DNA of 64,000 bases, from positions 38,303,999 to 38,367,998 of the forward strand of contig NC_068995.1 in the NCBI RefSeq assembly GCF_001194135.2, read 5' to 3'. The stretch is from Octopus bimaculoides. Its lineage: Eukaryota. Below the pieces are notes generated by a model. It saw only the letters and a program-made list of their open reading frames with translations. It had not been told where the DNA came from and did not search any database. The position numbers and the translations under genes are program-made. This document shows, piece after piece, positions 14,046-62,166 of this stretch. How positions within the stretch are numbered: the stretch's first letter is position 1; each line of letters begins with the position of its first letter.

Positions 14046-15215
14046 ATGTTTATACTTCAGATGCTTTGGTATATTTTGCTATGTATTTTGCACTCTTCCT
14101 CGAGGGATTCGCAGCGTGAGTTGAGAGAGCTCCTGTTTAAGAATTATAGCAACAATATAAAACCCGTTCTGTACACAGACACAATCATTGATGTGCATTT
14201 ATTTGTCTTTCCCTCTAAGATTTACAAATTAGATTTAGGAGCTGGATTACTTACTGGAAAATTCCTTATTGGTTACAGATGGACTGATGAATTCTTAAGG
14301 TGGAATGAAAGCCAATTTGATAATATATCATCAATCAAAATGCCTTTGAATAAAGTTTGGGAACCTCATGCATATGTGTGTAATGCTGAAACAATATATA
14401 ACGTCAGTACTCCAATACCCGAAGCAGTGATGTTATCCAATGGCACAATAAAGACATCCACTACGTTGGTATATACCATCCACTGTAAAATTGACAATAC
14501 TAAATATCCTTTTGACAAGCAGGCTTGCGAAGTACACATTTGTTTACCGTTAAGTAAACTAAATAACGTGAGAATAAAAACAATTACAACATTTAAAAAA
14601 CAAGTTACCTTAAGAAACTGGAATGTAGAAATAGACAAAGTTTTACAAAATCATAATGAAAGAATATTTTACGCGTCGTGGCACTTAACACTAACAAAAT
14701 TATCAGCACAGTCCAAAATAATAATACTTATTCCACCTTTCTTACTAACATGTGTAACGATTGCTACTTTTCTTTTGCCCCCAGATACGAAACAGAAAGT
14801 CACTTTTTCTACAACCAGTTTTCTATCAATAATGCTTTATTTGTCAAAAATGTCGAAGGATTTAGCATCCCACACAGCCAACCATTCCCTTCTATGGATA
14901 TATGTCTTTTGCTTATCATGCATCAGCGCCATATCATGTATTGAATCAATACTAGTTTGCCGCATTTATGTTTACCAAAAGTGCGAGGATCAATGCCAAA
15001 TGACTGAACGAACTATATCATCGAATGGAGACGTAGATAAAAGTGAAACATGTAACAAACACTTGAATAAGAAATGGTTCGTTGAAAGGGGCTCGATGAA
15101 GAAAAATTGCAAACATTTAAAATTTTTTCAATATAGATATATTGATAAATTCTGCTTGGTCTTCTTCACGTTGCTCTTTTTAATAATAGGTATAATTTTG
15201 AATTCCATTGCTTAG
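14046..15215 (+). CDS. Divergent Cys-loop ligand-gated ion channel subunit, chemotactile-receptor-like (CR-A in this report), single coding exon, 389 aa
   Basis: Uninterrupted ORF. The ORF-track start at 13959 is TTG; the first ATG is at 14046 (MFILQMLWYILLCILHSSS, signal-peptide-like). Contains WEPH..CN (WxP motif), Cys-loop CKIDNTKYPFDKQAC (C-x13-C), M1 (IIILIPPFLLTCVTIATFLLPP), M2, M3 and a C-terminal M4. No vicinal Cys-Cys in loop C. Confidence 0.9.
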   Translation: MFILQMLWYILLCILHSSSRDSQRELRELLFKNYSNNIKPVLYTDTIIDVHLFVFPSKIYKLDLGAGLLTGKFLIGYRWTDEFLRWNESQFDNISSIKMPLNKVWEPHAYVCNAETIYNVSTPIPEAVMLSNGTIKTSTTLVYTIHCKIDNTKYPFDKQACEVHICLPLSKLNNVRIKTITTFKKQVTLRNWNVEIDKVLQNHNERIFYASWHLTLTKLSAQSKIIILIPPFLLTCVTIATFLLPPDTKQKVTFSTTSFLSIMLYLSKMSKDLASHTANHSLLWIYVFCLSCISAISCIESILVCRIYVYQKCEDQCQMTERTISSNGDVDKSETCNKHLNKKWFVERGSMKKNCKHLKFFQYRYIDKFCLVFFTLLFLIIGIILNSIA

Positions 15216-15423
15216 ATCATTCCTTATAAAACGTTCAGAGTAACATTAAGTGTCGCATATTAAATACTTTATGTTGTGTATCACTAGTTACATACATCCA
15301 AATGTTTACTGTTAATTGTTATTATTCTTACTGTTATAATAACTATTATAACCATTTTTCTTGCTGTTGTGGTTGTTGCTCATTTTGTCGTTATTGTTGT
15401 TGTGATTATTGTTATCATTATTA

Positions 15424-15600: not shown

Positions 15601-16000
15601 TCCGGAATTTTGGCCTTGTACCAAATTTTAAAGTCCTTCTTCTTCTTCTTCTTCTTNNNNNNNNNNNNNNNNNNNNNNNNNNNNNNNNNNNNNNNNNNNN
15701 NNNNNNNNNNNNNNNNNNNNNNNNNNNNNNNNNNNNNNNNNNNNNNNNNNNNNNNNNNNNNNNNNNNNNNNNNNNNNNNNNNNNNNNNNNNNNNNNNNNN
15801 NNNNNNNNNNNNNNNNNNNNNNNNNNNNNNNNNNNNNNNNNNNNNNNNNNNNNNNNNNNNNNNNNNNNNNNNNNNNNNNNNNNNNNNNNNNNNNNNNNNN
15901 NNNNNNNNNNNNNNNNNNNNNNNNNNNNNNNNNNNNNNNNNNNNNNNNNNNNNNNNNNNNNNNNNNNNNNNNNNNNNNNNNNNNNNNNNTATCATTATTA

Positions 16001-17298: not shown

Positions 17299-18190
17299 TT
17301 ATGTTTGACTTTTGTTTTGCATTTGTACAAGTTGGATCCAAGTCTCACTCAGAGACCTCAAGAGAGAACAAGTTAGAAGTTCATGTAGGTGTTATGCCTA
17401 GGGTACCATATATTTGGATTTGTACATAGTGTTGTTCTAGAGAATGTTTAAGAAACCATAAGAAAATTATGTGTTTGTTTTAAAATTTGAGATCACATAG
17501 ACAGTAATTTACGTAGGATATGGGCAGTTTCCATGAGCAGTATCTTTTGAACTTCAGCCATTTGGGGTTTCCCGGTATCTGAGCTAGGTAGTAATCAGCC
17601 CGTTTCGCTGTCATTCCCAGGGCACCAATGAAAATAGGTATTGTTTTAGTCTTCAGGTCCCACATTTTGCTAATTTCTTTCCAAGATCTTTATATTTGCT
17701 CAGTTTTTGGTAGGTCTTGACAGATACGTTTATATCGATTGGGACAGTCATATCACGGAGGAGGCATGATTTTTGTCTGAAGTCTTTCAGTATGATGTCT
17801 GGCCTATTTGCATCTATCTTTCTGTCAGTTTGAATGGTGAAGTTCCAGAGGAGTGCGATGTGAGCATTTTCAAGTACTGGGGGTGGTTTTTGTTCCCACC
17901 AGTTTTTATCATGGGGCAAGTCCAGGTTTTTGCATATTACCCAGTGAATATATTGTGCAGCTCTATCATGCCTGTTGAGATACTCTGTAGGTGCAAGCAA
18001 ACTGCACATGAAGACAACATGATCAATGGTCTCATTTTGTTGTTGGCATATACGACATAATGGGGAGCTGCCGTTCTTTAATATGTTGGCCTGGTAATTC
18101 TTTGTAGGTAGGCATTGATTTTGGGCTGCTATGATAAACCCCTCTGTTTCTGATTTTAATCCAGAGGCCATTAACCATTGATGGGTAAGG
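17299..18190 (-). mobile_element. 5'-truncated R4/Dong-like non-LTR retrotransposon with (TAA)n on both sides
   Basis: ORF 17653-18171 has a CCHC knuckle (CRIC-x8-H-x4-C), RHDRAA and an RPDIILKD RLE core. The family 3' UTR follows; (TTA)n tracts lie at 17252-17298 and 18192-18257. Confidence 0.88.
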
Positions 18191-37820: not shown

Positions 37821-38969
37821 ATGCAATTGCTAATTGTCTTAGTTTTTGTGTTAATTGGAAGCGATGCCTCGGAAAAGAATGCCTTAAAATACAGATTATT
37901 AAGAAATTATGATAAAACAAACAGACCTGTTCATAACGATAATGATATTGTATTGGTAAATGTAACACTTGTCATATTGGACATTATTGAATTTGACATA
38001 TTGAATGGTGTACTGACAAGTGATCTGACTTTGGGACTACAATGGAACGATATTAATCTTACGTGGGACGAATCGGTAAACAATATAAGTTACATAAGTC
38101 TTGCACTACAATATATATGGCACCCTACCATACAAATGTGTAACGGCGTAATGGATAGATTCAAACTTGACGAGGACACAGAAATCTTTTTGACTAATGA
38201 AGGAACCGTTTTCTTGTATATAGACAATGTTTTCCAAACTTATTGTCGGATTAATGTAAATAAATATCCATTTGATGAACACGAATGTGATTTATTAGTT
38301 TGTTTGAATCATCAAGTATTTTGGGTAGCATCTATCAGTGAATTTGATCATTTTTCGATGTTAGAATCCACATCCAGTAACTGGGATTTTAGGTTTGAAA
38401 TGAGAGAACGTAAAAGAAAGCCCAGCAAAGCAGCTGGCGTTGTAGTTCACAGCAAAAGAAAAGTTACTAGCGCCACAATAACAAAAATAATACCCCCAGT
38501 AATGTTAACATTCTTGATACTCTCTGTTCATTTTTTGCCACCTGAATCTGGAGAAAAGGTTTCTGTTGCAATTACCGTGTTCCTTGCAAATATTGTATTC
38601 CTTTCTGAAACTGAAAAATTATTGGGCAATAAGTCTCGTGAAGCATCTATATATCTAATATATCTCCTGATTCTGACATTTGTAAGCGGAGTGTCTACTA
38701 TCGTCTCAGTTGTTATATCTAAACTGTATGCACAACCGAGAGGTACCAACATAAAATCATCGCCAGAAACAACACAAAACTCAGGCTTTTCGAAGAATAA
38801 AGTTGGGATTTTAGAATCTTCAAGTGAGCTAACCGTAAAAACAAAATTCAATAATTATTTTAAGAAACATTTTCTAACCCACCAGAATCTTGATAAAATA
38901 TTTTTCTTACTAATTATTATATTCTTACTACTCTATATTATAATTGCTTTAGCCTCTTCTGAGAAATAA
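37821..38969 (+). CDS. Chemotactile-receptor-like Cys-loop ion channel subunit (CR-B), single coding exon, 382 aa
   Basis: Signal peptide MQLLIVLVFVLIGSDAS; LLRNYDKTNRPV N-terminal helix; WHPTIQMCN; Cys-loop CRINVNKYPFDEHEC; LPPESGEKVS M1-M2 linker; four hydrophobic segments; no ACh-binding aromatics or Cys-Cys. Confidence 0.95.
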   Translation: MQLLIVLVFVLIGSDASEKNALKYRLLRNYDKTNRPVHNDNDIVLVNVTLVILDIIEFDILNGVLTSDLTLGLQWNDINLTWDESVNNISYISLALQYIWHPTIQMCNGVMDRFKLDEDTEIFLTNEGTVFLYIDNVFQTYCRINVNKYPFDEHECDLLVCLNHQVFWVASISEFDHFSMLESTSSNWDFRFEMRERKRKPSKAAGVVVHSKRKVTSATITKIIPPVMLTFLILSVHFLPPESGEKVSVAITVFLANIVFLSETEKLLGNKSREASIYLIYLLILTFVSGVSTIVSVVISKLYAQPRGTNIKSSPETTQNSGFSKNKVGILESSSELTVKTKFNNYFKKHFLTHQNLDKIFFLLIIIFLLLYIIIALASSEK

Positions 38970-39740: not shown

Positions 39741-41349
39741 CATTTTTGCTTATTGAAAAGACGACACTACGTTACAACTGAATGTAAACACGTAACTTAA
39801 TTTCATTCTAAACAGAAAATGTATATAACACAAACTATCAATCTTTGAATTATAAAGATCTTGGGCACTTGCATCTACTATACCTAATGGAAATAACATT
39901 CCCGTGAAGTCAAACACTATCTTGAAATGAACAGTGGTATATACATTCAGGAGCTGGTAGAATTAAATAATACTCACGAAAAGGAAATCATATTTCTCAC
40001 TGCTTGTACGAATTTTCTTTGATCACATTTATTCTCAAACATGGTGTATCTCCAGTTAAACAGCAGGAGGGGAAGCAACAAAAACTACAACAAAAACACA
40101 GCTCTCCACTACAAATATGCTTGCATCTAAGATTATATTTGGTTGCAAAACAAGTCTTCACCAAAATGTGTTCGGTTAATCACAACATGTATAAACAGGA
40201 AAATAGAAAATAGTGAACTGTTACATTTGCGAATGTTTTTCCGCTAAGGTATATATATTTATTTAACAATTATTTGATATAACTGCTCAGCAATATTGCA
40301 TTGTTACCGAACTACAATAAGAATTGTGGTTATTTTTGCGCTACTTAATACATTTTTCCTAAAATCAATTCATGTATATCTGTGATTGAACAAATACATA
40401 TATTATACACGTTTCAAATTAAAGAATAATATACATAATTGATCATTACTAGAAAATAACTTTGATTTTCATATCCAGTTTTCGGCAAAACGATTGTTAT
40501 TGCCTTACATTGCTTAATTGCGTGCGTGTTTTCTGAAGTTGTTTTACCTTATGAATCACCAAATAAAATTGATTGAAAATATTTTTACTTCAACAATAAT
40601 TATATTTTTAAACGTATGTGAGATAATTACTTTATATTTAGTTGCTGCATGATATGCAAATTTAAACAGAAAAAATATTTTCTCCTATTTTGCAACATCA
40701 CGATATGATTATATTTACTGCTCGGTTAAACATTCCAGTTATCAACACACTAAATATATTTTGCTTATGAGTAATTGAATTCAGTGTTATACAGCTTCAC
40801 AATATCTAAAAAATTATGTAAAAACATCGTTCGTTATGAATAAAAACAGACAAAATAATACTATCAACATTGTTATTTTATTTCTCATCATCCGTCATTT
40901 TACATTGTTGCAATGTTGGAACAATGCCCTCAAGTTTTAATCAATCTTATCGACATAATACATACTTATATCGGTATTATATATTTCCAAGAATTTTTAT
41001 CGAATCACTAGTTAGAGGAAACAAACTCAACACATAAACGTATGCTAGCATGCATACACATATAAAATATTTATACTTATATACATGCATTCATACATAC
41101 ATATATAAAAGAATCGGCATTCGGAACAAATCCTCTCTAAAAAATTAAATTGAAAAGTGCTCGTCAAATCGAGATTATAGTAAAATTTGGAGTAGAATTG
41201 CAGGCTTATTGAAATTCTAATGCGGTACCTAGCGTATAATCGTATTATAGCACAACATCTAACATTGCTCTTTACACCAATTCATTAAATCAGTCAGAGT
41301 ACCTCTATAATCTTTCGGTATCTTCTATATATAATTGTCAAATTATGTC

Positions 41350-41570
41350 CACTCTATTCTTTTAATCTTTTACTTCTTTCAGTCATTTTTACTGGGGGAA
41401 CCGCCTTGAAAGCTTTTAGTCGAACAAATTGACCTTCAGGCTTATTTATATTTTTTAAAGCCTAGCATTTCTATTCAATTCTTTTGTCGAACCGCTAATT
41501 TCCGGGGGTGTAAACACACCAACACTGCTTGTGAAGCAGTATTTGGAGTACAAGCACAGACAAAAAGACA
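41350..41570 (-). mobile_element. SINE 3' body (same family as 7205-7588)
   Basis: CTTTTACTTCTTTCAGTCATTT...AAACACACCAACAC shared with 7205-7400. Confidence 0.65.
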
Positions 41571-41639
41571 CATACATATGTATTATAATGCTGCATTAGA
41601 AAGGTCCAACTTCAAGAATAAGACATACTACATTATTTA

Positions 41640-41885
41640 CATTACTTACAATTAATGGATATTTGTCCTCATCTTGTTTGTTGTAAACACAACGTTTCGG
41701 CTAATATACCCTCCAGTCTTCATCAGGTGTCTTGTGGAAATTTTAAACCTGGGTTCTCATTCCTAAGACATTTTTCGATGTTATTAATATTATTACTATT
41801 ATCATTGAAGTCACTGCCTGGAATTGAACTCGGAGAATTGTGGTTAGTAGCCCGCGCTCTTAACCACTATGCCATATGCCCGTGG
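41640..41885 (-). mobile_element. tRNA-derived SINE (third head type)
   Basis: Minus-strand TGGCATAGTGG (A box) and GAGTTCAATTCC (B box) with no complete acceptor stem. Confidence 0.65.
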
Positions 41886-41996
41886 GCATGTAAATATGAT
41901 GATGATGATGATGATGATGATGCCATAAATAGTAGATAGATAGATAAATAGATTGATAGATAGATTGACATACAGACAGGAATGCAGAGAGATAAT

Positions 41997-42057
<61 letters not shown>

Positions 42058-42632
42058 GCACAGTGTTATTTTGTTTAAATGCACTATAAACCCATTCACA
42101 ACGTGTCACCCAACCCATGAGTATAGTCGTAGGCATCACTCATATATATTTTAGCAGTGCGATCAAACACGACACGGAATAAGAAAACAAGATATGAACG
42201 ACGCCTCCCTGATAGCTTCTGCTGTTCAATATATAGCATTAAATATTTATCAATAAAGTGAGTAATTATTCTTATTTCTAACCATATATGACGAGAAGAC
42301 ATCGGCGTGCCTATTCACGTTTAACAATATGAGACGGTGTTTTAAACGGTACATGATATATCATTAAAAAGAAACGATGGACAATAATAACACAAAAACT
42401 GACATTACAAGCATAAGATTTTACTTTACGTGTAATGAATCATTAATCGATAAGTGTAATCTTCTATTACATCAAGTGATTGTAGTGTTTTCCAATATGT
42501 ACGCGAAATTTAAAACATTTGACATGTTTGGGCTTGATACAAATACATAAGTAGATGTACACAGAATGAAGGAAAAGGTGTCAAGAAAAATGAGAAAACG
42601 ACAGTCGTAGGCTAGCATGACTAGCAGACTTG

Positions 42633-42667
42633 TATTTAAGGGCGTTAATGTTTCACAGTCGTCATTT
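42633..42667 (+). promoter_or_regulatory. Putative core promoter of CR-C (TATA-like TATTTAAG plus Inr TCATTT)
   Basis: TATTTAAG at 42633; the A of TCATTT (42664) is 31 nt downstream, canonical TATA-Inr spacing. TGTATTTAAGGGC is shared with the CR-D upstream region. Confidence 0.5.
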
Positions 42668-43049
42668 TTCTCTTCACACCTACACTGATACGGAGATGAT
42701 CTACACGGCTACATGTACACGAAGACCAGTATATAGGGCACGGTATGCTGAATTAAAAAAAACTATTTTCGTTTGAATTTAAAAATATAGACTGCAACGT
42801 AAGGTATTTCGAACTGTTTCAATTTAAATGTTCTTATTTAGATTTGTGGAGCAATTGTTTTGAACACCTCATGTCTATTAAAATACTCTAACGAGTATAA
42901 TAACAAGAAGAAAAAAAAGAAGTTACTCATCAAATTCCCTGATGTGTTTCGTATATATAGATGAAATATATCTAACTATGTAATATATAGTCAAACTTCA
43001 GAAATTGAGCGCAAGAATAAAAGGGAATATTTTCATTTAATCAAGAAAC

Positions 43050-44195
43050 ATGAAATTAATAGCTGTCTTAATTTTTACGTTAATTGGAAGCATTTCGTCC
43101 AAGAGAAGCGCACTCCGAGATATGTTATTAAAGAAGTACGATAAAACAAAGAGACCAGTTGAATACGATGATGACATCCTATACGCAAATGTATCACTTA
43201 CTCTAAAGAAAATTATAGAATTAGATATTCTAAAAGGTGACATCGCAAGTAATCTTATACTCGGCTTCGAATGGAACGACGTTAATCTGAAATGGACTGA
43301 TTCACAATATAATATAAGTTACATAAATGTCAAATTAAGTGATGTATGGTATCCTAACATACAAATATGTAATAGTGTAACAGGTAAATTTAGTTTTGAT
43401 GATAACAAGGAAGTAACAGTAAATAGGAACGGAGACGTTAACTTATATATAGACAAAATATTCGAAACTTACTGCAGGATTAACGTTGAAAAATACCCTT
43501 TTGATGAACACGAATGTGATATATCTGTTTGCTTTGAGCATCAGATGTATGTGGAAGAAACAGTGGGGGAATTTGATTACGAAGTAAAACTCCAATCTGC
43601 ATCCAATCAATGGGACTTTAATTTTGAAAAATCTGACGTTGAAAATGATAATATTGTAGCAGTTGGTTTTATAATTTACGGCAAGAGAAAAGTTAGCAGT
43701 GCAACAATAACTAAAATTATACCTCCAATAATGTTAACATTATTGGTCCTTTCTGTCCATTTACTGCCACCTGAATCTGGAGAGAAAGTTTCTGTTGCAA
43801 TCACTGTTTTTCTTACAAATATCGTTTTCCTTTCTGAAACTGAAAAAATATTGGGTAATAATTCTCAAGACGCCTCCATATATCTAATGTATCTCTTAAT
43901 TCTGACACTTGTCAGCGGATGTTCTTCTGTTTTCTCGATAATAGTGTGTAAATTGTATGCGAACCAGACTGGAGCCAACACCAATTCAGCTCCCGAAATT
44001 ACTCAAGAATCAAATGGACAAAGAAATAGAGTTGGTGTCTCAGAAATTTCAGACGAACAAAATATTAAAATAACAGCTACAAAGCCTTGTAAAAAGCATT
44101 TATTAACCTATAAGAAACTGGACCAAATAATTTTGTTAATAATTGTTATATTTCTACTACTCTTTATCATTATTTCTGTGTCGACGTCTTCGTAG
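43050..44195 (+). CDS. Chemotactile-receptor-like Cys-loop ion channel subunit (CR-C), single coding exon, 381 aa
   Basis: Signal peptide MKLIAVLIFTLIGSISS; WYPNIQICN; Cys-loop CRINVEKYPFDEHEC (Cys codons 43473 and 43515); LPPESGEKVS; four TM segments; collinear paralogue of CR-B and CR-D. Confidence 0.95.
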   Translation: MKLIAVLIFTLIGSISSKRSALRDMLLKKYDKTKRPVEYDDDILYANVSLTLKKIIELDILKGDIASNLILGFEWNDVNLKWTDSQYNISYINVKLSDVWYPNIQICNSVTGKFSFDDNKEVTVNRNGDVNLYIDKIFETYCRINVEKYPFDEHECDISVCFEHQMYVEETVGEFDYEVKLQSASNQWDFNFEKSDVENDNIVAVGFIIYGKRKVSSATITKIIPPIMLTLLVLSVHLLPPESGEKVSVAITVFLTNIVFLSETEKILGNNSQDASIYLMYLLILTLVSGCSSVFSIIVCKLYANQTGANTNSAPEITQESNGQRNRVGVSEISDEQNIKITATKPCKKHLLTYKKLDQIILLIIVIFLLLFIIISVSTSS

Positions 44196-45982
44196 TAGTA
44201 ATAAAAAATGAAACTACCATTATTTTCACTGTGTACGACAAGTTTTGAAATAGTAACTAATATAATAATATTTTCTGTATCACAAATTAGAAACCTTAGA
44301 AATGATAGTAAACAACAAATATTAAAGCCACAACGGATGCCATTATTTCTATATTTCGCCTCTGAATGATTGAAATCCACGCAATCTCGCGTATTTAGAG
44401 TATTTCCGCATTGTTTACGGAGCTTTCCTGTAAAACTTCCGAATGAGTTTTATAAGGACATTGACACATAATCTTTCAACTACTCTTTTGAACTATATAC
44501 CATGCATAGAATGAAATCATAACATCGAGAATCAAAATATAAAGAGAATGAAAAAGGAACGACGTAAAAGATACGCAACTCTGTCATTTGATTTTATCAC
44601 AATTAGTTTTCTCGAGAACGTATAGAAATATCTGCTTCTTTTGTGAAGGCACAAATCTTTTATACTTCCATATTCAGAGATGTAAATAGTGAAGTGCATT
44701 GTGTTTTAAATTCATTGCATATGTTCTTTGTGTAAAACTGGTACTTGGAACTGTCCATTTGTTTACACTCTATACAATTATTAGATTTTGAAATTGCTGA
44801 GAAAATGGAATTTAAGACACTACATTCTATTCGTAAATTTACACAGGAAATCGGAGATAGTGTGGAGTTTGTTAAAAAAAAATCGGCAACCTACATCTAC
44901 GAATTCTCTTTTGAAAGACAGATAGAGGAATGTTAACATCAAACTCATGGTATTGGACCTGAGAAAGTAATACTATCATATCTATCAGCAATTTAATTAT
45001 ACTTTCTTCTATTGATTGTCCTTTGCAAAACGTTGAAACATCCTTTTCTACGATTTATACTTTCGATGTTTTTGCTATCGCACCCATAAAGCAACAGTTT
45101 TGATATATCATTGGGTGCCGTTTTAGTGATGGGTATGTGTGTGTATGCGCATACTGACTTATGTATATGATTTCTTGTGCTGCTTTTAAATTTCTTCTCA
45201 CATAACATTAAAGAAATAGTAATATTAAAGTCTTATTGAAATTGATTTTACTGTAATAAGTATATTAAATTTCTACCCTTCTCTCTACATTGGCTGCATT
45301 ATTAACTTTTCTTCCATTATCATTTTCATGTTACTGTTTTCTGTTTTTACATTTCCTTTCATATAATCAAACAACTCTATGCGCTTTACAGACTCTCTCA
45401 TCTCACAGAATATTATCTTTGTACCACTGTTGTATTGTAAATATTTTGTTCCTTATTCTTGTCTCAATCTTTTCTCCCACTTATCTAACACCATTATTTC
45501 ATTGTTTGCTATTATTTTTTATAGGGAAATTCCATACAATATTGTCTCACTCACTACACCCACATAGCTTTACATTTTGGTTGTACCCCTTCTGAACGCA
45601 TCTACAACAAATGACATATCCACCACGACCTTAGAATAACACACACGCAAATATTAAAAATGATAAACTCTAAAGAGATACTCAAGGAATTATATAAAAA
45701 ATATATATTTATATAAAAACAACCCTAACCACTGCTCACTCGACTAGATACTAACACACTATCTTCTTCTCCGTCGTCTTCTTCGTCTTCTTCTTCATTT
45801 CTACCACCTCCTCCCTTACTTTATTACTACTACTGATGTTTAGGATAACACCTTCGCAAATATTATAAACAATATATTTAAAAGGGATTTCTCAAGAATT
45901 CAAATCACTACTCCCATCAACAATAGGTCACTCTGCTACTATCATAGCGCTCCCGTTTCTTCTTCTTCTTCTTCTTCTTCTT

Positions 45983-46013
<31 letters not shown>

Positions 46014-48259
46014 GCCAAGAATTCACAACGACCTCGAACCCACAAGAGTTAAGAGAAATGGAGACAGACAGAAACAAGGAAAATGCCTCTGGTATTTGAA
46101 TACTATGCAAAGATGTTTTTAAAAAGTCTTTTCATTTAAATTTGCCAAAATTTAACTTTTCCAGAATTTGTGATCCATATTTATAGTTGAAAACTTCGCA
46201 AGGATCGAAACCGGTACTGATATGTTTTTTATAAAAGTATTTTAGCATTTTCTACGTTGACTTTTTTCCNNNNNNNNNNNNNNNNNNNNNNNNNNNNNNN
46301 NNNNNNNNNNNNNNNNNNNNNNNNNNNNNNNNNNNNNNNNNNNNNNNNNNNNNNNNNNNNNNNNNNNNNNNNNNNNNNNNNNNNNNNNNNNNNNNNNNNN
46401 NNNNNNNNNNNNNNNNNNNNNNNNNNNNNNNNNNNNNNNNNNNNNNNNNNNNNNNNNNNNNNNNNNNNNNNNNNNNNNNNNNNNNNNNNNNNNNNNNNNN
46501 NNNAAATAGAGACATATATATACATACATATATATTTATATATGTAGATGTGCATATAAATACATACATATATATATATACATACATACACAAATATATA
46601 TATGTATATATATATATGTATATATATATTTCCCTGGCTATCGCCAAGCAAACACGGGAAATTACTTCGTCCCGCTTTCAGTCCGTGCCTCACAGCGTTC
46701 ATATACACATAATTTTTCACGTCTGGCCGCATAGCCTTTTCCGTTTGTTTTCCTGTCTTGTTTTCTGTCCGCCACTACATTCCTCCATGGCACAGGTTTA
46801 ATTTGTGTATACAAATTTATTTGCGGTCCATGGGAAGAGCCATTTTAACGATGCGTCGTGCCCAACTCTTCGAAACGCCGGTGTTAAAATGGGGATAGCC
46901 GATGAAGGAATATGTTCTCTATGTGGCTTGTGTGTTTTCTGTACTCTGGTTATTATTATTTTCTTGTGTACGTTTTGTTTGCAATGTCCTGTACCCAGAT
47001 ATGCACCTATATATACAGGTAGACGTAGGTATGCACATACCTGTACGTATATATGCATACACTCATTTGTTATTTGTATTTTATATATATATACGTATAT
47101 ATATAAAGTGAATTGGTAAGGTACCGAGTACCGTATGAGGGAAAATATATATGAAAGAAGGTTTGTAAATGCAATTCCAAAGTTGTTTATTGACTTGACC
47201 GGTTTCACTTTTTTAGAAAATGATTGTCAAATGTAAAATGTAAAGCTGTGTTGTGTTAAGTACTGGTTATGACTAAATTATTAAAATACAGTTATACATT
47301 CTTTGATAATAAGAAGAAAACGTTAAAAGTAGTTTACAAGAAAATATTTAAGAAAGTATTCAACAAAAAGTATTATGAGTTCAATAAAAATCATGTTTGA
47401 TTGGTAGTATATATATTCACAGAAGGAGCTATATTTAAGAATTTACAAAATTTTGGAGAGCAATTGACCTGTCTTTCTGACATTTTCTGTCTTGTGTGAG
47501 GCTAAGAAATGTTTGCTATTTTAAGGGACAGTATGGGAAGTTGGTCAGGGGAGGAGGAAGGAAGAGCAATGTTGAATCAGAAGGATTCTTTTTGTTTCTG
47601 GGATAGTTTGTCATGGGTCAGTGGTTTTTGAGACTGGTCTTAGAGGTCAGAATTGTGTGAGTGCGTTTGTGTGTATGTGCACATCTCTATGTGTGTGTGT
47701 ATATACATGTGCTTGCGTTTGTGTGTGCGGGATATTTTTGATTGGTCCCAGAGTTTATATGGGTCTGTGTGTGTTTTATATTTGGTAGGATGATGTGTGT
47801 ATATGTGTACACGTTTGTGTGTGTGTGTCTGTGTGTATGTATGTGATTAGTATTTGTCAGAGCAGTGTGTGTGCATGTGTGCGTCTGTGTTTGTTCGCGT
47901 GTGTGTATCTGTGCGTCTGTGTGTGCATGTGTATGTTTATGTGTTTTGTGTTGGTGGGGATGCTATGTGTGTGTACGTGAGAGTGTGTGTGTCCCTGTCT
48001 GGGTATGTTTGTGTTGTTATAATTGTCCTTGTGTTGCGCGCATGTGCGAACAACTGTATGTGTGTGGGTGTGGGTGTGCATGTGCATGTGTTTGTGAACG
48101 TTTTGTATTTTTCAGGGGATCTGTGTCTGTCCGTGTGTGCTAGTTTATCCGGGTGGAGTGTATGTGTGTGTGTGTGCGTGTACGTTCTGTGCATGTTGGT
48201 ACTGAGTATGCGTTTGTGTGTGAGTCCATATATGTGGGTATGGTTTATGTAGTTTCCTG

Positions 48260-57829: not shown

Positions 57830-57966
57830 GTAATTGGAACTCTTTTTAGACGTTTGTGTATTAATTTGGACACAAAATACATTGTCAGTACATACGTAAT
57901 TTACATCATCCCTATTATTAGGATACTTTTAATAAAAAATACTTCCTATATGTTTTAACTATGCAG
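57830..57966 (+). other. Predicted 5'-UTR intron of CR-D
   Basis: Donor CAAG|GTAATT at 57830 and acceptor ttttaactatgcAG|G at 57966. Homologous donors precede CR-B (37602), CR-C (42804) and CR-psi (60829). Confidence 0.5.
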
Positions 57967-58059
57967 GAGAAATATATAGAAAGACGCAACACATGCACAG
58001 ACTTAAATATACTAAGAAAAAAAATTATCAAGCGCAATATTTCCTTTAAATTGATCATC

Positions 58060-59205
58060 ATGAAATTGATAGTTGCCTTAATTCATATTTCAATTGCAAG
58101 TGCTTCTTCAGAAAATATACCTCTAAAAACAGTGTTATTCAGCAATTACGATAAAACAAAGAAACCGGCTAATGAGGAAGATGGCTTAGTATATGTAAAT
58201 GTGTCACTATTCGTAGAGAACATTATTGGATTAGACATCAAGCAAGGTGTACTGGCAAGTAATTTAATACTCGGCATAAACTGGCGCGACACTAATCTCA
58301 AGTGGGATAACTCAAAATACGGGAAAAGTCTCATAAATGTTGAATTAGTTAAGATATGGTACCCTAATATTCAAATATGTAATAGCATAACGGGTAAATT
58401 TCATATGGATCCGAACATGGCAGTCACTATAAATTCTACCGGGTACATTCACTTGTATATAGACGAAATATTCAAAACTTACTGCAGGATTAACGTTCAG
58501 AAATATCCTTTTGATGAGCACGAATGTGATATATTGGTTTGCTTTGCGCATCTGATGCATATGGAGGAAAGAATAGGTGCGTTTGAGTACGATATAGAAT
58601 CCAAATCCAAATCAAAACAATGGAATTTCAAATTTGAAGAGATTGACACGGGAAAGACGAATATTACAGCAGTGGGCCTTACAGTTCACAGCAAGAGAAA
58701 AATTAACAGTGCAACAATAACAAAAATTATACCCCCAATTATGTTAACATTTTTGATCTTTGCTGTCCATCTGCTCCCGGCTGACTCAGGAGAGAAAGTT
58801 TCACTTGCAATCACTGTTTTTCTTACAAACATAGTTTTCCTTTCTGAAACTGAAAAAACATTGGGTAATAATTCTGAGGAACCATCTGCATATCTAATAT
58901 ATCTCTTAATTTTGACATTTGTCAGCGGTTGTTCTACTGTCGTGTCAGTAATTATATGTAAAGTGCATGCTCACCAGACTGGATCGAAAAATAACTCAAC
59001 TCCAGAAATTGCAAACGAAACAAATAGATCAAGAAACAGGGTTGGTGTTTCAGAAATCTCAGATGAACAAAATATGAAGATAAAGGCGAAAACTGCGTAT
59101 AAAAAACATGTTATAACATCTCAGAAACTAGACAAAATATCTGTGTCAATAATTGTCGTATTTCTCATGCTCTATATCATAATTGCTTTGTCAGATATTA
59201 AGTAA
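58060..59205 (+). CDS. Chemotactile-receptor-like Cys-loop ion channel subunit (CR-D), single coding exon, 381 aa
   Basis: The ORF track starts at 57961, but the ATG at 58060 (MKLIVALIHISIASASS) aligns with the paralogue starts and gives the same length as CR-C. Contains WYPNIQICN, Cys-loop CRINVQKYPFDEHEC, LPADSGEKVS and four TM segments. Confidence 0.95.
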   Translation: MKLIVALIHISIASASSENIPLKTVLFSNYDKTKKPANEEDGLVYVNVSLFVENIIGLDIKQGVLASNLILGINWRDTNLKWDNSKYGKSLINVELVKIWYPNIQICNSITGKFHMDPNMAVTINSTGYIHLYIDEIFKTYCRINVQKYPFDEHECDILVCFAHLMHMEERIGAFEYDIESKSKSKQWNFKFEEIDTGKTNITAVGLTVHSKRKINSATITKIIPPIMLTFLIFAVHLLPADSGEKVSLAITVFLTNIVFLSETEKTLGNNSEEPSAYLIYLLILTFVSGCSTVVSVIICKVHAHQTGSKNNSTPEIANETNRSRNRVGVSEISDEQNMKIKAKTAYKKHVITSQKLDKISVSIIVVFLMLYIIIALSDIK

Positions 59206-61068: not shown

Positions 61069-62166
61069 ATGAAATTGATAGTTGCTCTAATGTTTATGTC
61101 ATGTGGAAGCGCTTCTCCATACGAAAACGGCTTTTTTCCCAACGTATTAAAAAATTATCATAAAACAAAGAGACCTATTGATGACGTTGAGAATATCATA
61201 TTCATAAATGTGTCACTTAACGTAAAGCGTGTTATTGAATCGGGTATTAACCAAGTACAGCATAAAATGGATGGTCGTTAATCGGAAATGGGAATATTCA
61301 GTTTATGGTATAAATCATACGAATGTTTTCTTATATGAAATTCAGTATCCTAACATACAAATATGTAATATTAATATCGTATCGGGGGATTTCAGTTGTT
61401 TTGATCTGTTCAAAGTAGTCACTGTCAATGCTGATAGGATCGTTCACTTATATATGGACAAAATATTCAAAACTTTGTGCAGGATTAACGGTAAAAAATA
61501 TCCTTTCGATGAGTACGAATATGATATAACGTTTTGCTTTGTATGTAGAGGAAAACACCTAAATCAAATCAATGGGATTTCAATTTTTAAGAGAGTGACG
61601 GCGAAAAGGAATATATTATAGCAGTTGGTCTTACAGTTCAGGGCAAGAGGAACGTTAGCAGTGTAACAGTAACAAAAATTATACACCCAACAATGTTAAC
61701 GTTATTGATATTTTCTGTCCATTTATTTCCGCCTGCATCTGGAGTCAAAGTTTCTCTTGCAATTATTGTTTTTCTTACAAACATCGTTTTCCTTTCTGAA
61801 ACTGAAAAAAAAAAAAATATTCGGTAATAATTCTCAGGATCCCTCCATATATCTAATATAATTTTTTAATTCTGAAATTTGTCCGGCGAATGTTCTACTG
61901 TCGAGTCAGTAATTGTGTGTACACTTTTTGCTCACAAGACTGGATCGAACATTAATTAAGCTCCAGAAATTGCACAACAATCAAATAGATCAAGAAAAAG
62001 TGTTTGTGTCTCAGAAACCTCAGATAAACAAAATTTTAAAATAAAAACTCTGAATTCTCATCAGAAATATTTTCTAACGCATCAAAAAGTAGACAAAATA
62101 GTTTTGTCAATAATTGTTGTATACCTCTTACTCTATATCATCTTTGCTTTGTCAGACTCTTGGTAA
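61069..62166 (+). pseudogene. CR-like Cys-loop channel pseudogene (CR-psi)
   Basis: Starts MKLIVALMF like CR-D and is collinear to the end. Lesions: frameshifting deletion near 61255; second Cys-loop Cys to Tyr (61520); deletion after loop B; TAA at 61588; GEK to GVK (61744); A6 to A13 run (61805-61817); TAA at 61859; +1 nt in M3. Confidence 0.92.

Follow-up and report, generated by a model that had tools for sequence, protein, structure and literature searches.

What happens to the ion selectivity of a sensory channel when its cation-selectivity filter is replaced? This question is raised by a gene, here denoted CR-A, in a 64,000-nucleotide stretch of the Octopus bimaculoides genome (assembly GCF_001194135.2, contig NC_068995.1, positions 38,303,999 to 38,367,998 of the forward strand; henceforth, the window, within which all positions are counted). 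CR-A encodes a pentameric ligand-gated channel subunit of the chemotactile receptor (CR) type, in which the Gly-Glu-Lys (GEK) motif at the cytoplasmic end of the M2 pore helix is replaced by Lys-Gln-Lys (KQK). To our knowledge, every CR characterised so far has been described as a cation channel. Judged by its domain content and by its pattern of substitution, CR-A is an intact, selectively maintained gene of the octopus CR family, and its product probably alters the range of ions that pass through the channel.

CR-A reads LLPPDTKQKVTF, where the codons aaa cag aaa, at 14790-14798 of an uninterrupted 389-codon open reading frame (ORF), specify KQK; the translation around the filter is ...FLLPPDTKQKVTFSTTSFLSIMLYLSKMSKDL..., and the M1-M2 linker is FLLPPDTKQKVTF. 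With 0' assigned to K251, a conserved basic position, the numbering puts D247 at -4', K249 at -2', Q250 at -1', L260 at 9', K268 at 17', K271 at 20' and D272 at 21'. The original prediction, made from the letters of the window, that KQK sits in the M1-M2 linker with Lys at -2' and Gln at -1', is thus correct in position, codons and numbering, and the three paralogues with which it compared CR-A, namely, CR-B, CR-C and CR-D, are indeed of the GEK type (Table 1). The SGEK motif is common to these paralogues, octopus CRT1 and squid CRB1. The inferred pore-facing residues of the CR-A M2 are K-2', T2', T6', L9', L13', S16' and K20'. On paper, the replacement of G(-2')E(-1')K(0') by K-Q-K would amount to an electrostatic inversion at the cytoplasmic selectivity filter.

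The filter of CR-A is rare among its relatives. A phmmer search of 1.84 billion representatives of clusters at 50% identity gave 4135 matches; the best 149 were used, and 129 of these yielded 145 alignable M2 segments. In these nearest segments, the -1' position is acidic in 143 (E in 138, D in 5), with a single S and a single A and no Gln in any of the 145, whereas -2' is G in 132 and K or R in none. As the original prediction stated, CR-A has lost this usual G(-2')E(-1') combination. A few nAChR-like representatives (P0050, P0123, P0134 and P0048) combine Pro at -2' with Glu at -1' (PEK/PER), mixing the signatures of anion and cation pores. The basic 0' residue, K251 in CR-A, does not discriminate between channel types, for cation-selective members have a basic residue there too (90 K and 52 R among the 145 segments). 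In an alignment of 108 relatives, 26 columns reach a conservation of at least 80%, and CR-A deviates at six of these, all of them at the pore or the gating interface: the pre-M1 Arg is replaced by Lys, -2' Gly by Lys, -1' Glu by Gln, 13' Val by Leu and the M2-M3 Pro by Ala, and there is an S277T change. The filter columns in this alignment are G in 101/108 (-2') and E in 105/108 (-1'), and the 13' Leu is also found in CRT1.

CR-A was also compared with the known types of pore. The Glu or Asp at -1' and the Gly at -2' of a cation pore are absent (Q250 and K249 take their places), and the acidic -4' cytoplasmic ring is present (D247). From the Pro-Ala-Arg anion pore, the -2' Pro and -1' Ala are missing, as is the 13' Thr, where CR-A has L264, as does the cationic CRT1. 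A neutral -1' residue (Q250) within an nAChR-like M2, a feature of accessory subunits, is present.

Could such a filter be an error of the assembly or the mark of a dying gene? There is some cause for suspicion: the draft assembly has 18 N runs (10-762 N) across 7149-53838 of the window, two of which (13087-13848 and 15657-15989) lie on either side of CR-A, the gene model in public records is only 335 amino acids (aa) long, the Pfam Neur_chan_memb domain (PF02932) reaches only 19.3 bits, under the cut-off of 28.1, and the same window holds a true CR pseudogene. However, the entire coding sequence (CDS) of CR-A, from the ATG at 14046 to the stop at 15213-15215, lies in a gap-free contig (13849-15656) bounded by the two N runs, and KQK recurs in independent reads from three to four sequencing runs of another species, with an identical CDS. 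The ORFs of both species are intact, which would happen by neutral chance with a probability of only about 1e-4, and their transmembrane domains diverge with a ratio of non-synonymous to synonymous substitution rates (dN/dS) of 0.12. An artefact or a decaying gene is, therefore, largely refuted, and we consider it the least probable of the explanations, scarcely credible at this point. The pseudogene itself, a fifth CR-like locus, is spread over three reading frames with several stops and frameshifts, and most resembles CR-C and CR-D, to which its pieces are 46-58% identical; the M2 of this locus, PPASGVKVSLAIIVFLTNIVFLSETEK, has Val in place of the -1' Glu, in contrast to the intact CR-A. Most of the window ORFs of at least 150 aa in the mechanical listing are artefacts that cross N stretches.

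The membership of CR-A in the CR family is borne out by several lines of evidence. The Pfam Neur_chan_LBD domain (PF02931) is recognised with an E-value of 2.5e-28 and 99.4 bits (cut-off 26); the Cys-loop, C147-KIDNTKYPFDKQA-C161, agrees with the conserved columns at C147, P155, F156, D157 and C161, as do P230 in M1 and L260 at 9', and M4 is present as well. Four helices (231-243, 249-272, 278-317 and 364-388, all at low confidence) appear in an AlphaFold2 model, a poor one built on a 5-sequence alignment (predicted local distance difference test score 53.7, predicted template modelling score 0.35), from which only the helix boundaries were taken. The closest match in the PDB is octopus CRT1 (8eis/9e6b; E 4e-49), with 5-HT3A and the nicotinic acetylcholine receptors (nAChRs) at about 1e-20 and squid CRB1 far behind CRT1. 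Identity is about 32% to CRT1 over 289 columns and 26-28% to CR-B, CR-C and CR-D; these three intact paralogues and the pseudogene lie on the same strand as CR-A within 48 kb. CR-A is intronless, a structure characteristic of CRs according to PMC13174522, and CRs are known to assemble as homo- and heteropentamers (PMC11526382). In a neighbour-joining tree, which has no bootstrap support, CR-A and its closest relative, P0002, form a long-branched pair within the CR family; the sister of this pair is a GER-type sequence, and the surrounding groups are GEK or GER. Given this nested position, KQK is derived.

The sole public protein for it, P0001 (335 aa, source MetaClust; window 14046-15050), ends in ...DVDKSET and lacks the pre-M4 stretch and M4, whereas in the genome the frame stays open as far as 15215 and the orthologue has its full length. 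When the 389-aa, 384-aa and 335-aa forms of CR-A were looked up as exact proteins, no gene call, transcript contig or second assembly was found. The gene appears to be mis-modelled or unannotated.

The second species is central to the argument. P0002 (381 aa), a close relative of CR-A with 71% identity and an intact ORF, comes from contigs roughly 1.57 kb in length that were assembled from the runs SRR11869384, SRR11869390 and SRR11869394, with the same CDS in all three. The Logan contig L001 aligns to 13890-15419 of the window with 78.8% identity (83.9% in the CDS, 75.9% in the 5' flank and 75.3% in the 3' flank), covering 170-200 bp on either side of the CDS, and because the alignment extends through both flanks, L001 represents the orthologous locus in another species. 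A microsatellite of the (TTG/TTA)n type lies at 15373-15422, about 160 bp 3' of the CR-A stop, and one in the same place in L001 (about 1520-1572) ends the contig; given such microsatellite ends and the alignable flanks on both sides, contigs of this kind are read as genomic rather than as evidence of transcription. The orthologue reads FLLPPDTKQKVTFSTTSFLSIMLYLS, and its M2 is 100% identical to that of CR-A from -6' to 16', with the Gln codon at -1' being CAG in CR-A and CAA in L001, a synonymous difference. Synonymous divergence (dS, Nei-Gojobori) is 0.36, and dN/dS is 0.45 for the whole gene, 0.59 for the extracellular domain (ECD) and 0.12 for M1-M3, where the comparison of non-synonymous and synonymous changes gives a Fisher p of 1e-7; under simulated random substitutions at the observed number, the ORF stayed open in 1/10,000 trials. 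By these measures, purifying selection has preserved KQK together with M2 beyond O. bimaculoides, as judged from one other species. The original prediction had allowed for a private degenerative change or an assembly error, in which case orthologues would have GEK; the second species keeps KQK, and this, along with its intact ORF and the gap-free CDS of CR-A, counters both. Homologue searches with a single sequence, a two-sequence profile and an 18-sequence CR profile recovered only P0001, P0002 and two distant CRs.

Might KQK nevertheless be neutral or compensated, with the -4' Asp and other acidic residues sustaining an ordinary cation channel, and the motif itself a product of lineage-specific drift under the structural constraint on M2? 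D247 is indeed kept, CRT1 is cation-selective and Ca2+-permeable despite its K20', and conservation by itself is silent on what is being conserved. However, with -1' almost invariably acidic and -2' never basic among the relatives, it is unlikely that neutral drift would strike precisely these two positions and then come to a halt, and in 5-HT3A, neutralisation of -1' alone abolishes cation preference (PMC3091210). We regard neutrality as very improbable.

The filter is not the only part of the ion path to have changed. Three changes that accompany KQK favour altered permeation, namely, a Val in the extracellular vestibule and the excess of positive charge in M2 and in the pre-M4 stretch. The vestibular residue, V120, aligns with E104 of CRT1, which is reported to contribute to a ring favouring Ca2+ entry (bioRxiv 10.1101/2025.03.03.641191), and is Val in the orthologue as well. 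The net charge of M2 (from -2' to 21') is +3 in CR-A and the orthologue vs -2 to 0 in eleven other CRs, and that of the pre-M4 stretch is +7 in both vs -2 to +5 in these eleven; the latter stretch is inferred to line the cytoplasmic portals, in a region where the AlphaFold2 model is unreliable. The extra lysines along M2 that the original prediction pointed to, K17' and K20', are both there, but their significance is reduced: K20' is family-wide (SETEK in CR-B, CR-C and CR-D, QIDK in CRT1, LSK in squid CRB1), and K17' is private to O. bimaculoides, since the orthologue has Asn at this position. As an anion signature, the outer M2 end was considered and rejected, squid CRB1 (DNLSK), which is likewise non-acidic there, and CRT1 (QIDK) being similar.

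At the gating interface, the predicted loss of the pre-M1 Arg stands, with Lys (K218) in a nearly invariant column. In both species the codon is AAA; the one before it encodes Thr (ACA) in CR-A but Arg (AGG) in P0002, so that LTKL in the former corresponds to VRKL in the latter, and a one-residue shift of register would let the orthologue keep an Arg. The Pro of the M2-M3 loop is replaced by Ala, a loss that is not unique to CR-A within the family because CR-B, CR-C and CR-D carry Gly in that column (LLGN, ILGN and TLGN, at about 38610, 43840 and 58850). The orthologue shares five of the six departures from the conserved columns, all except S277T.

In the ligand-binding part, loop C of CR-A (NHNERIFYASW) lacks a CC pair, and the residues Y39/Y58/W122/F124/L153/L191/F192 of CRT1 correspond to F55/L74/S138/T140/L169/R206/I207 of CR-A, making for a pocket less aromatic than that of CRT1. 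F55, L74, S138, T140, L169 and I207 are the same in both orthologues, with only R206 differing (Gly in P0002). The conservation of this inner pocket within a faster-evolving ECD matches the pattern of conserved inner and variable outer pocket positions that has been described for CRs, which suggests that CR-A probably still senses a ligand.

The -1' ring is the subject of established work by Imoto (1988), Galzi (1992) and Bertrand (1993). According to PMC5715906, which cites the first two of these, what sets conductance and charge selectivity lies at the cytoplasmic end of M2. Furthermore, in mouse 5-HT3A, the E-1'A mutant is non-selective (PNa/PCl 0.89), and with the addition of the S19'R basic ring, it becomes anion-preferring (0.37), whereas charges in the vestibule and in the membrane-associated (MA) stretch alter conductance and relative Ca2+ permeability (PCa) but not charge selectivity (PMC3091210). 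In the light of these precedents, we favour the possibility, to which we assign about an even chance, that CR-A is a working subunit that removes the high, CRT1-type Ca2+ permeability and the strict cation preference from the channels that contain it, to an extent set by stoichiometry. Each CR-A subunit would delete one -1' carboxylate from the ring and would place an ammonium group, that of the -2' Lys, at the narrowest constriction. With one or two CR-A subunits among CRs of the GEK type, CR-A would act as a pore-tuning subunit that lowers PCa and cation conductance, whereas in a homomer or with CR-A in the majority, the pore would be expected to range from non-selective to anion-preferring.

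Several observations speak against so strong an effect. CR-A keeps an acid at -4' (D247); squid CRB1 and CRT1 also have K20'; and -1' Gln is compatible with a cation-selective pore in the gamma and epsilon subunits of the muscle nAChR. The -2' lysine ring may be partly deprotonated or off-axis, and the A-to-I RNA editing of coleoids could recode the AAA or CAG codons. The local RNA around KQK does not fold with unusual stability (z = +0.96), which is weak evidence either way on editing. Finally, the annotated proteomes of O. sinensis and O. vulgaris in the database searched gave no close match, so the gene may be unannotated or lost in these species.

A more radical possibility is that CR-A forms a truly anion-selective, chloride-conducting chemotactile channel by means of K-Q-K instead of Pro-Ala-Arg. 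In a CR-A homomer, acidic residues would be absent between -3' and 20' and ten lysines would stand at the cytoplasmic mouth, the positive charges of M2 and of the pre-M4 stretch are repeated in every subunit and conserved in the orthologue, a neutral -1' combined with a single basic ring suffices for the shift to PNa/PCl 0.37 in 5-HT3A (PMC3091210), and molluscan anion-selective channels of the nAChR type are known, as cited in PMC13174522. The residue aligned with D97 of muscle alpha1 is Lys in P0002, the sign found in anion-selective channels (PMC3091210), but Thr, not Lys, in CR-A itself. Moreover, the -2' Pro, -1' Ala and 13' Thr are all lacking (with a 13' Leu as in the cationic CRT1), D247 remains at -4', and homomeric assembly is hypothetical. 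On balance, full anion selectivity seems rather unlikely.

At the other extreme, CR-A could be purely accessory, adjusting conductance, Ca2+ permeability, gating or trafficking in heteromers that stay cation-selective. The gamma (PAKAGGQKCTV...VAKK) and epsilon (PAQAGGQKCTV) subunits of the muscle receptor, with -1' Q and 0' K, work in cation-selective pentamers, CRs do heteromerise (PMC11526382), and the changes of the pre-M1 Arg and the M2-M3 Pro suggest a coupling unlike that of ligand-driving subunits. However, gamma and epsilon retain the -2' Gly where CR-A has Lys, and the combination of kept inner-pocket residues with a fast-evolving ECD resembles a ligand-sensing rather than a purely structural subunit. 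A purely accessory role appears to us just as unlikely as full anion selectivity. The original prediction is thus supported in part: the loss of the filter and its conservation hold, and the anion permeability, low conductance or modulatory role that it proposed are candidate outcomes. The description of the channel as inhibitory is a further leap that goes beyond anion permeability and hinges on the chloride equilibrium potential (E_Cl) of the sucker sensory cells.

Table 1. Features of CR-A and of its neighbourhood (positions in the window)
Feature	Position	Strand	Basis and remarks
CR-A CDS	14046..15215	+	ORF and translation; one exon of 389 codons and a stop; CR-type subunit of a pentameric ligand-gated channel
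N119-V120-S121, extracellular vestibule loop	14400..14408	+	HMMER alignment to 8eis_A; N-x-S glycosylation sequon
Cys-loop, C147 to C161	14484..14528	+	C-x13-C, with YPFD; intact in translation
K218, pre-M1 arginine column	14697..14699	+	R in 107/108, His in 1/108; K in CR-A and P0002
M1-M2 linker and filter: D247 (-4'), T248 (-3'), K249 (-2'), Q250 (-1'), K251 (0')	14784..14798	+	same residues in the orthologue
M2 pore helix, K249 (-2') to D272 (21')	14790..14861	+	AlphaFold2 helix 249-272 (low confidence); net +3
K268 (17') and K271 (20'), extracellular end of M2	14847..14858	+	translation; comparison with the orthologue
A274, M2-M3 loop proline column	14865..14867	+	P in 98/108; Ala in CR-A and P0002
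Pre-M4 (MA-like) stretch, residues 339-368	15060..15149	+	HLNKKWFVERGSMKKNCKHLKFFQYRYIDK; 9 K+R, 2 D+E, net +7
M4 transmembrane helix, residues 369-389	15150..15212	+	hydrophobic segment; AlphaFold2 helix 364-388
172-aa ORF	17656..18171	-	weak zf-RVT match
CR-B, GEK-type paralogue	37821..38969	+	LPPESGEKVS
CR-C, GEK-type paralogue	43050..44195	+	LPPESGEKVS; identical protein on record (GCA_001194135.2, CM046615.1), with every base of window 41050-46195 the same in that record
CR-D, GEK-type paralogue	58060..59205	+	LPADSGEKVS
Fifth CR-like locus	61069..62160	+	pseudogene

Some other features of the window deserve mention. The ORF of CR-D can be extended upstream by 33 codons to an ATG at 57961 (57961-58059, + strand; MQEKYIERRNTC...), but 58060 is the more likely start because the signal-peptide-like MKLIVALIH there resembles the starts of CR-B and CR-C. 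The minus-strand ORF between CR-A and CR-B probably belongs to a broken retroelement: its match to zf-RVT, a zinc-binding region found in reverse transcriptases, has an E-value of 2.8e-5 and does not reach the Pfam cut-off. An Rfam scan of the window gave no matches.

If the reading of CR-A as a selection-maintained subunit with an altered filter is correct, the consequences for octopus sensory biology could be considerable. The passage of Ca2+ through CRT1 is regarded as belonging to the sensory code (bioRxiv 10.1101/2025.03.03.641191), and a conserved CR without the cation filter would imply either a second electrical output or the tuning of the pore inside the receptor complex, which would fit the idea of extensive peripheral signal processing in octopus arms. 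Should CR-A conduct chloride, it would represent a natural conversion from cation to anion permeation inside a sensory receptor family, and the taste-by-touch signal of the sucker would have the opposite sign or, depending on E_Cl, would be excitatory through Cl- efflux. There are practical implications as well: a Ca2+-impermeable or anion-preferring subunit would score as dead in deorphanisation screens that rely on Ca2+ imaging, and cloning from the 335-aa gene model, which lacks M4, would be expected to give a non-functional construct. A natural K-Q-K filter that is maintained by selection could also be used to assess the share of the first M2 turn in charge selectivity.

That CRs include members other than GEK had already been noticed at the level of the clade: the MolluscaGenes preprint (PMC13174522, May 2026), in its survey of TM2 motifs, mentions a CR clade with 'mixed ion selectivity patterns', and its main text gives no motif, gene, orthologue, selection or functional detail. 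The literature that we searched contained no paper linking CRs to anion permeation. The nearest structural relative, CRT1 (CR518; PDB 8eis, 9e6b), is a demonstrated Ca2+-permeable cation channel (bioRxiv 10.1101/2025.03.03.641191), which shares with CR-A the Cys-loop, the M1 Pro, L9', L13', Y14', K20', alignable inner-pocket positions, an intronless gene and a location on chromosome CM046615.1 along with other CRs. The two differ where permeation and gating are concerned: PPESGEK in CRT1 vs PPDTKQK in CR-A, E104 in the vestibule vs V120, the pre-M1 Arg and M2-M3 Pro vs Lys and Ala and, in the pocket, the aromatic W122 and F124 vs S138 and T140.

The muscle nAChR gamma and epsilon subunits (PDB 9avu_B, 9ye6_B) are natural analogues in the sense of removing one carboxylate from the intermediate ring, with the same -1' Gln and 0' Lys as in CR-A and, in gamma, also a 20' Lys. 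However, they differ from CR-A in having a -2' Gly, an extra linker residue (GGQK) and the pre-M1 Arg, and they occur obligatorily in an acetylcholine-gated, cation-selective heteromer. Human 5-HT3B, with the basic-neutral-basic triplet R-A-R from -2' to 0', is not known to function alone and reportedly lowers the Ca2+ permeability of 5-HT3AB receptors. The anion-selective Cys-loop channels (GABA-A, GlyR, GluCl and the molluscan nAChR-type channels) resemble CR-A in the non-acidic -1', the basic 0' and the basic outer end of M2, but they have Pro-Ala-Arg and, usually, 13' Thr, whereas CR-A has Lys-Gln-Lys, Leu at 13' and Asp at -4'. In 5-HT3A, basic residues in the MA stretch lower conductance (PMC3091210), a precedent for the strongly basic pre-M4 stretch of CR-A. 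Whereas the 5-HT3A pore mutants are engineered variants of a vertebrate serotonin receptor, the change in CR-A is natural, conserved, and found in a chemosensory family.

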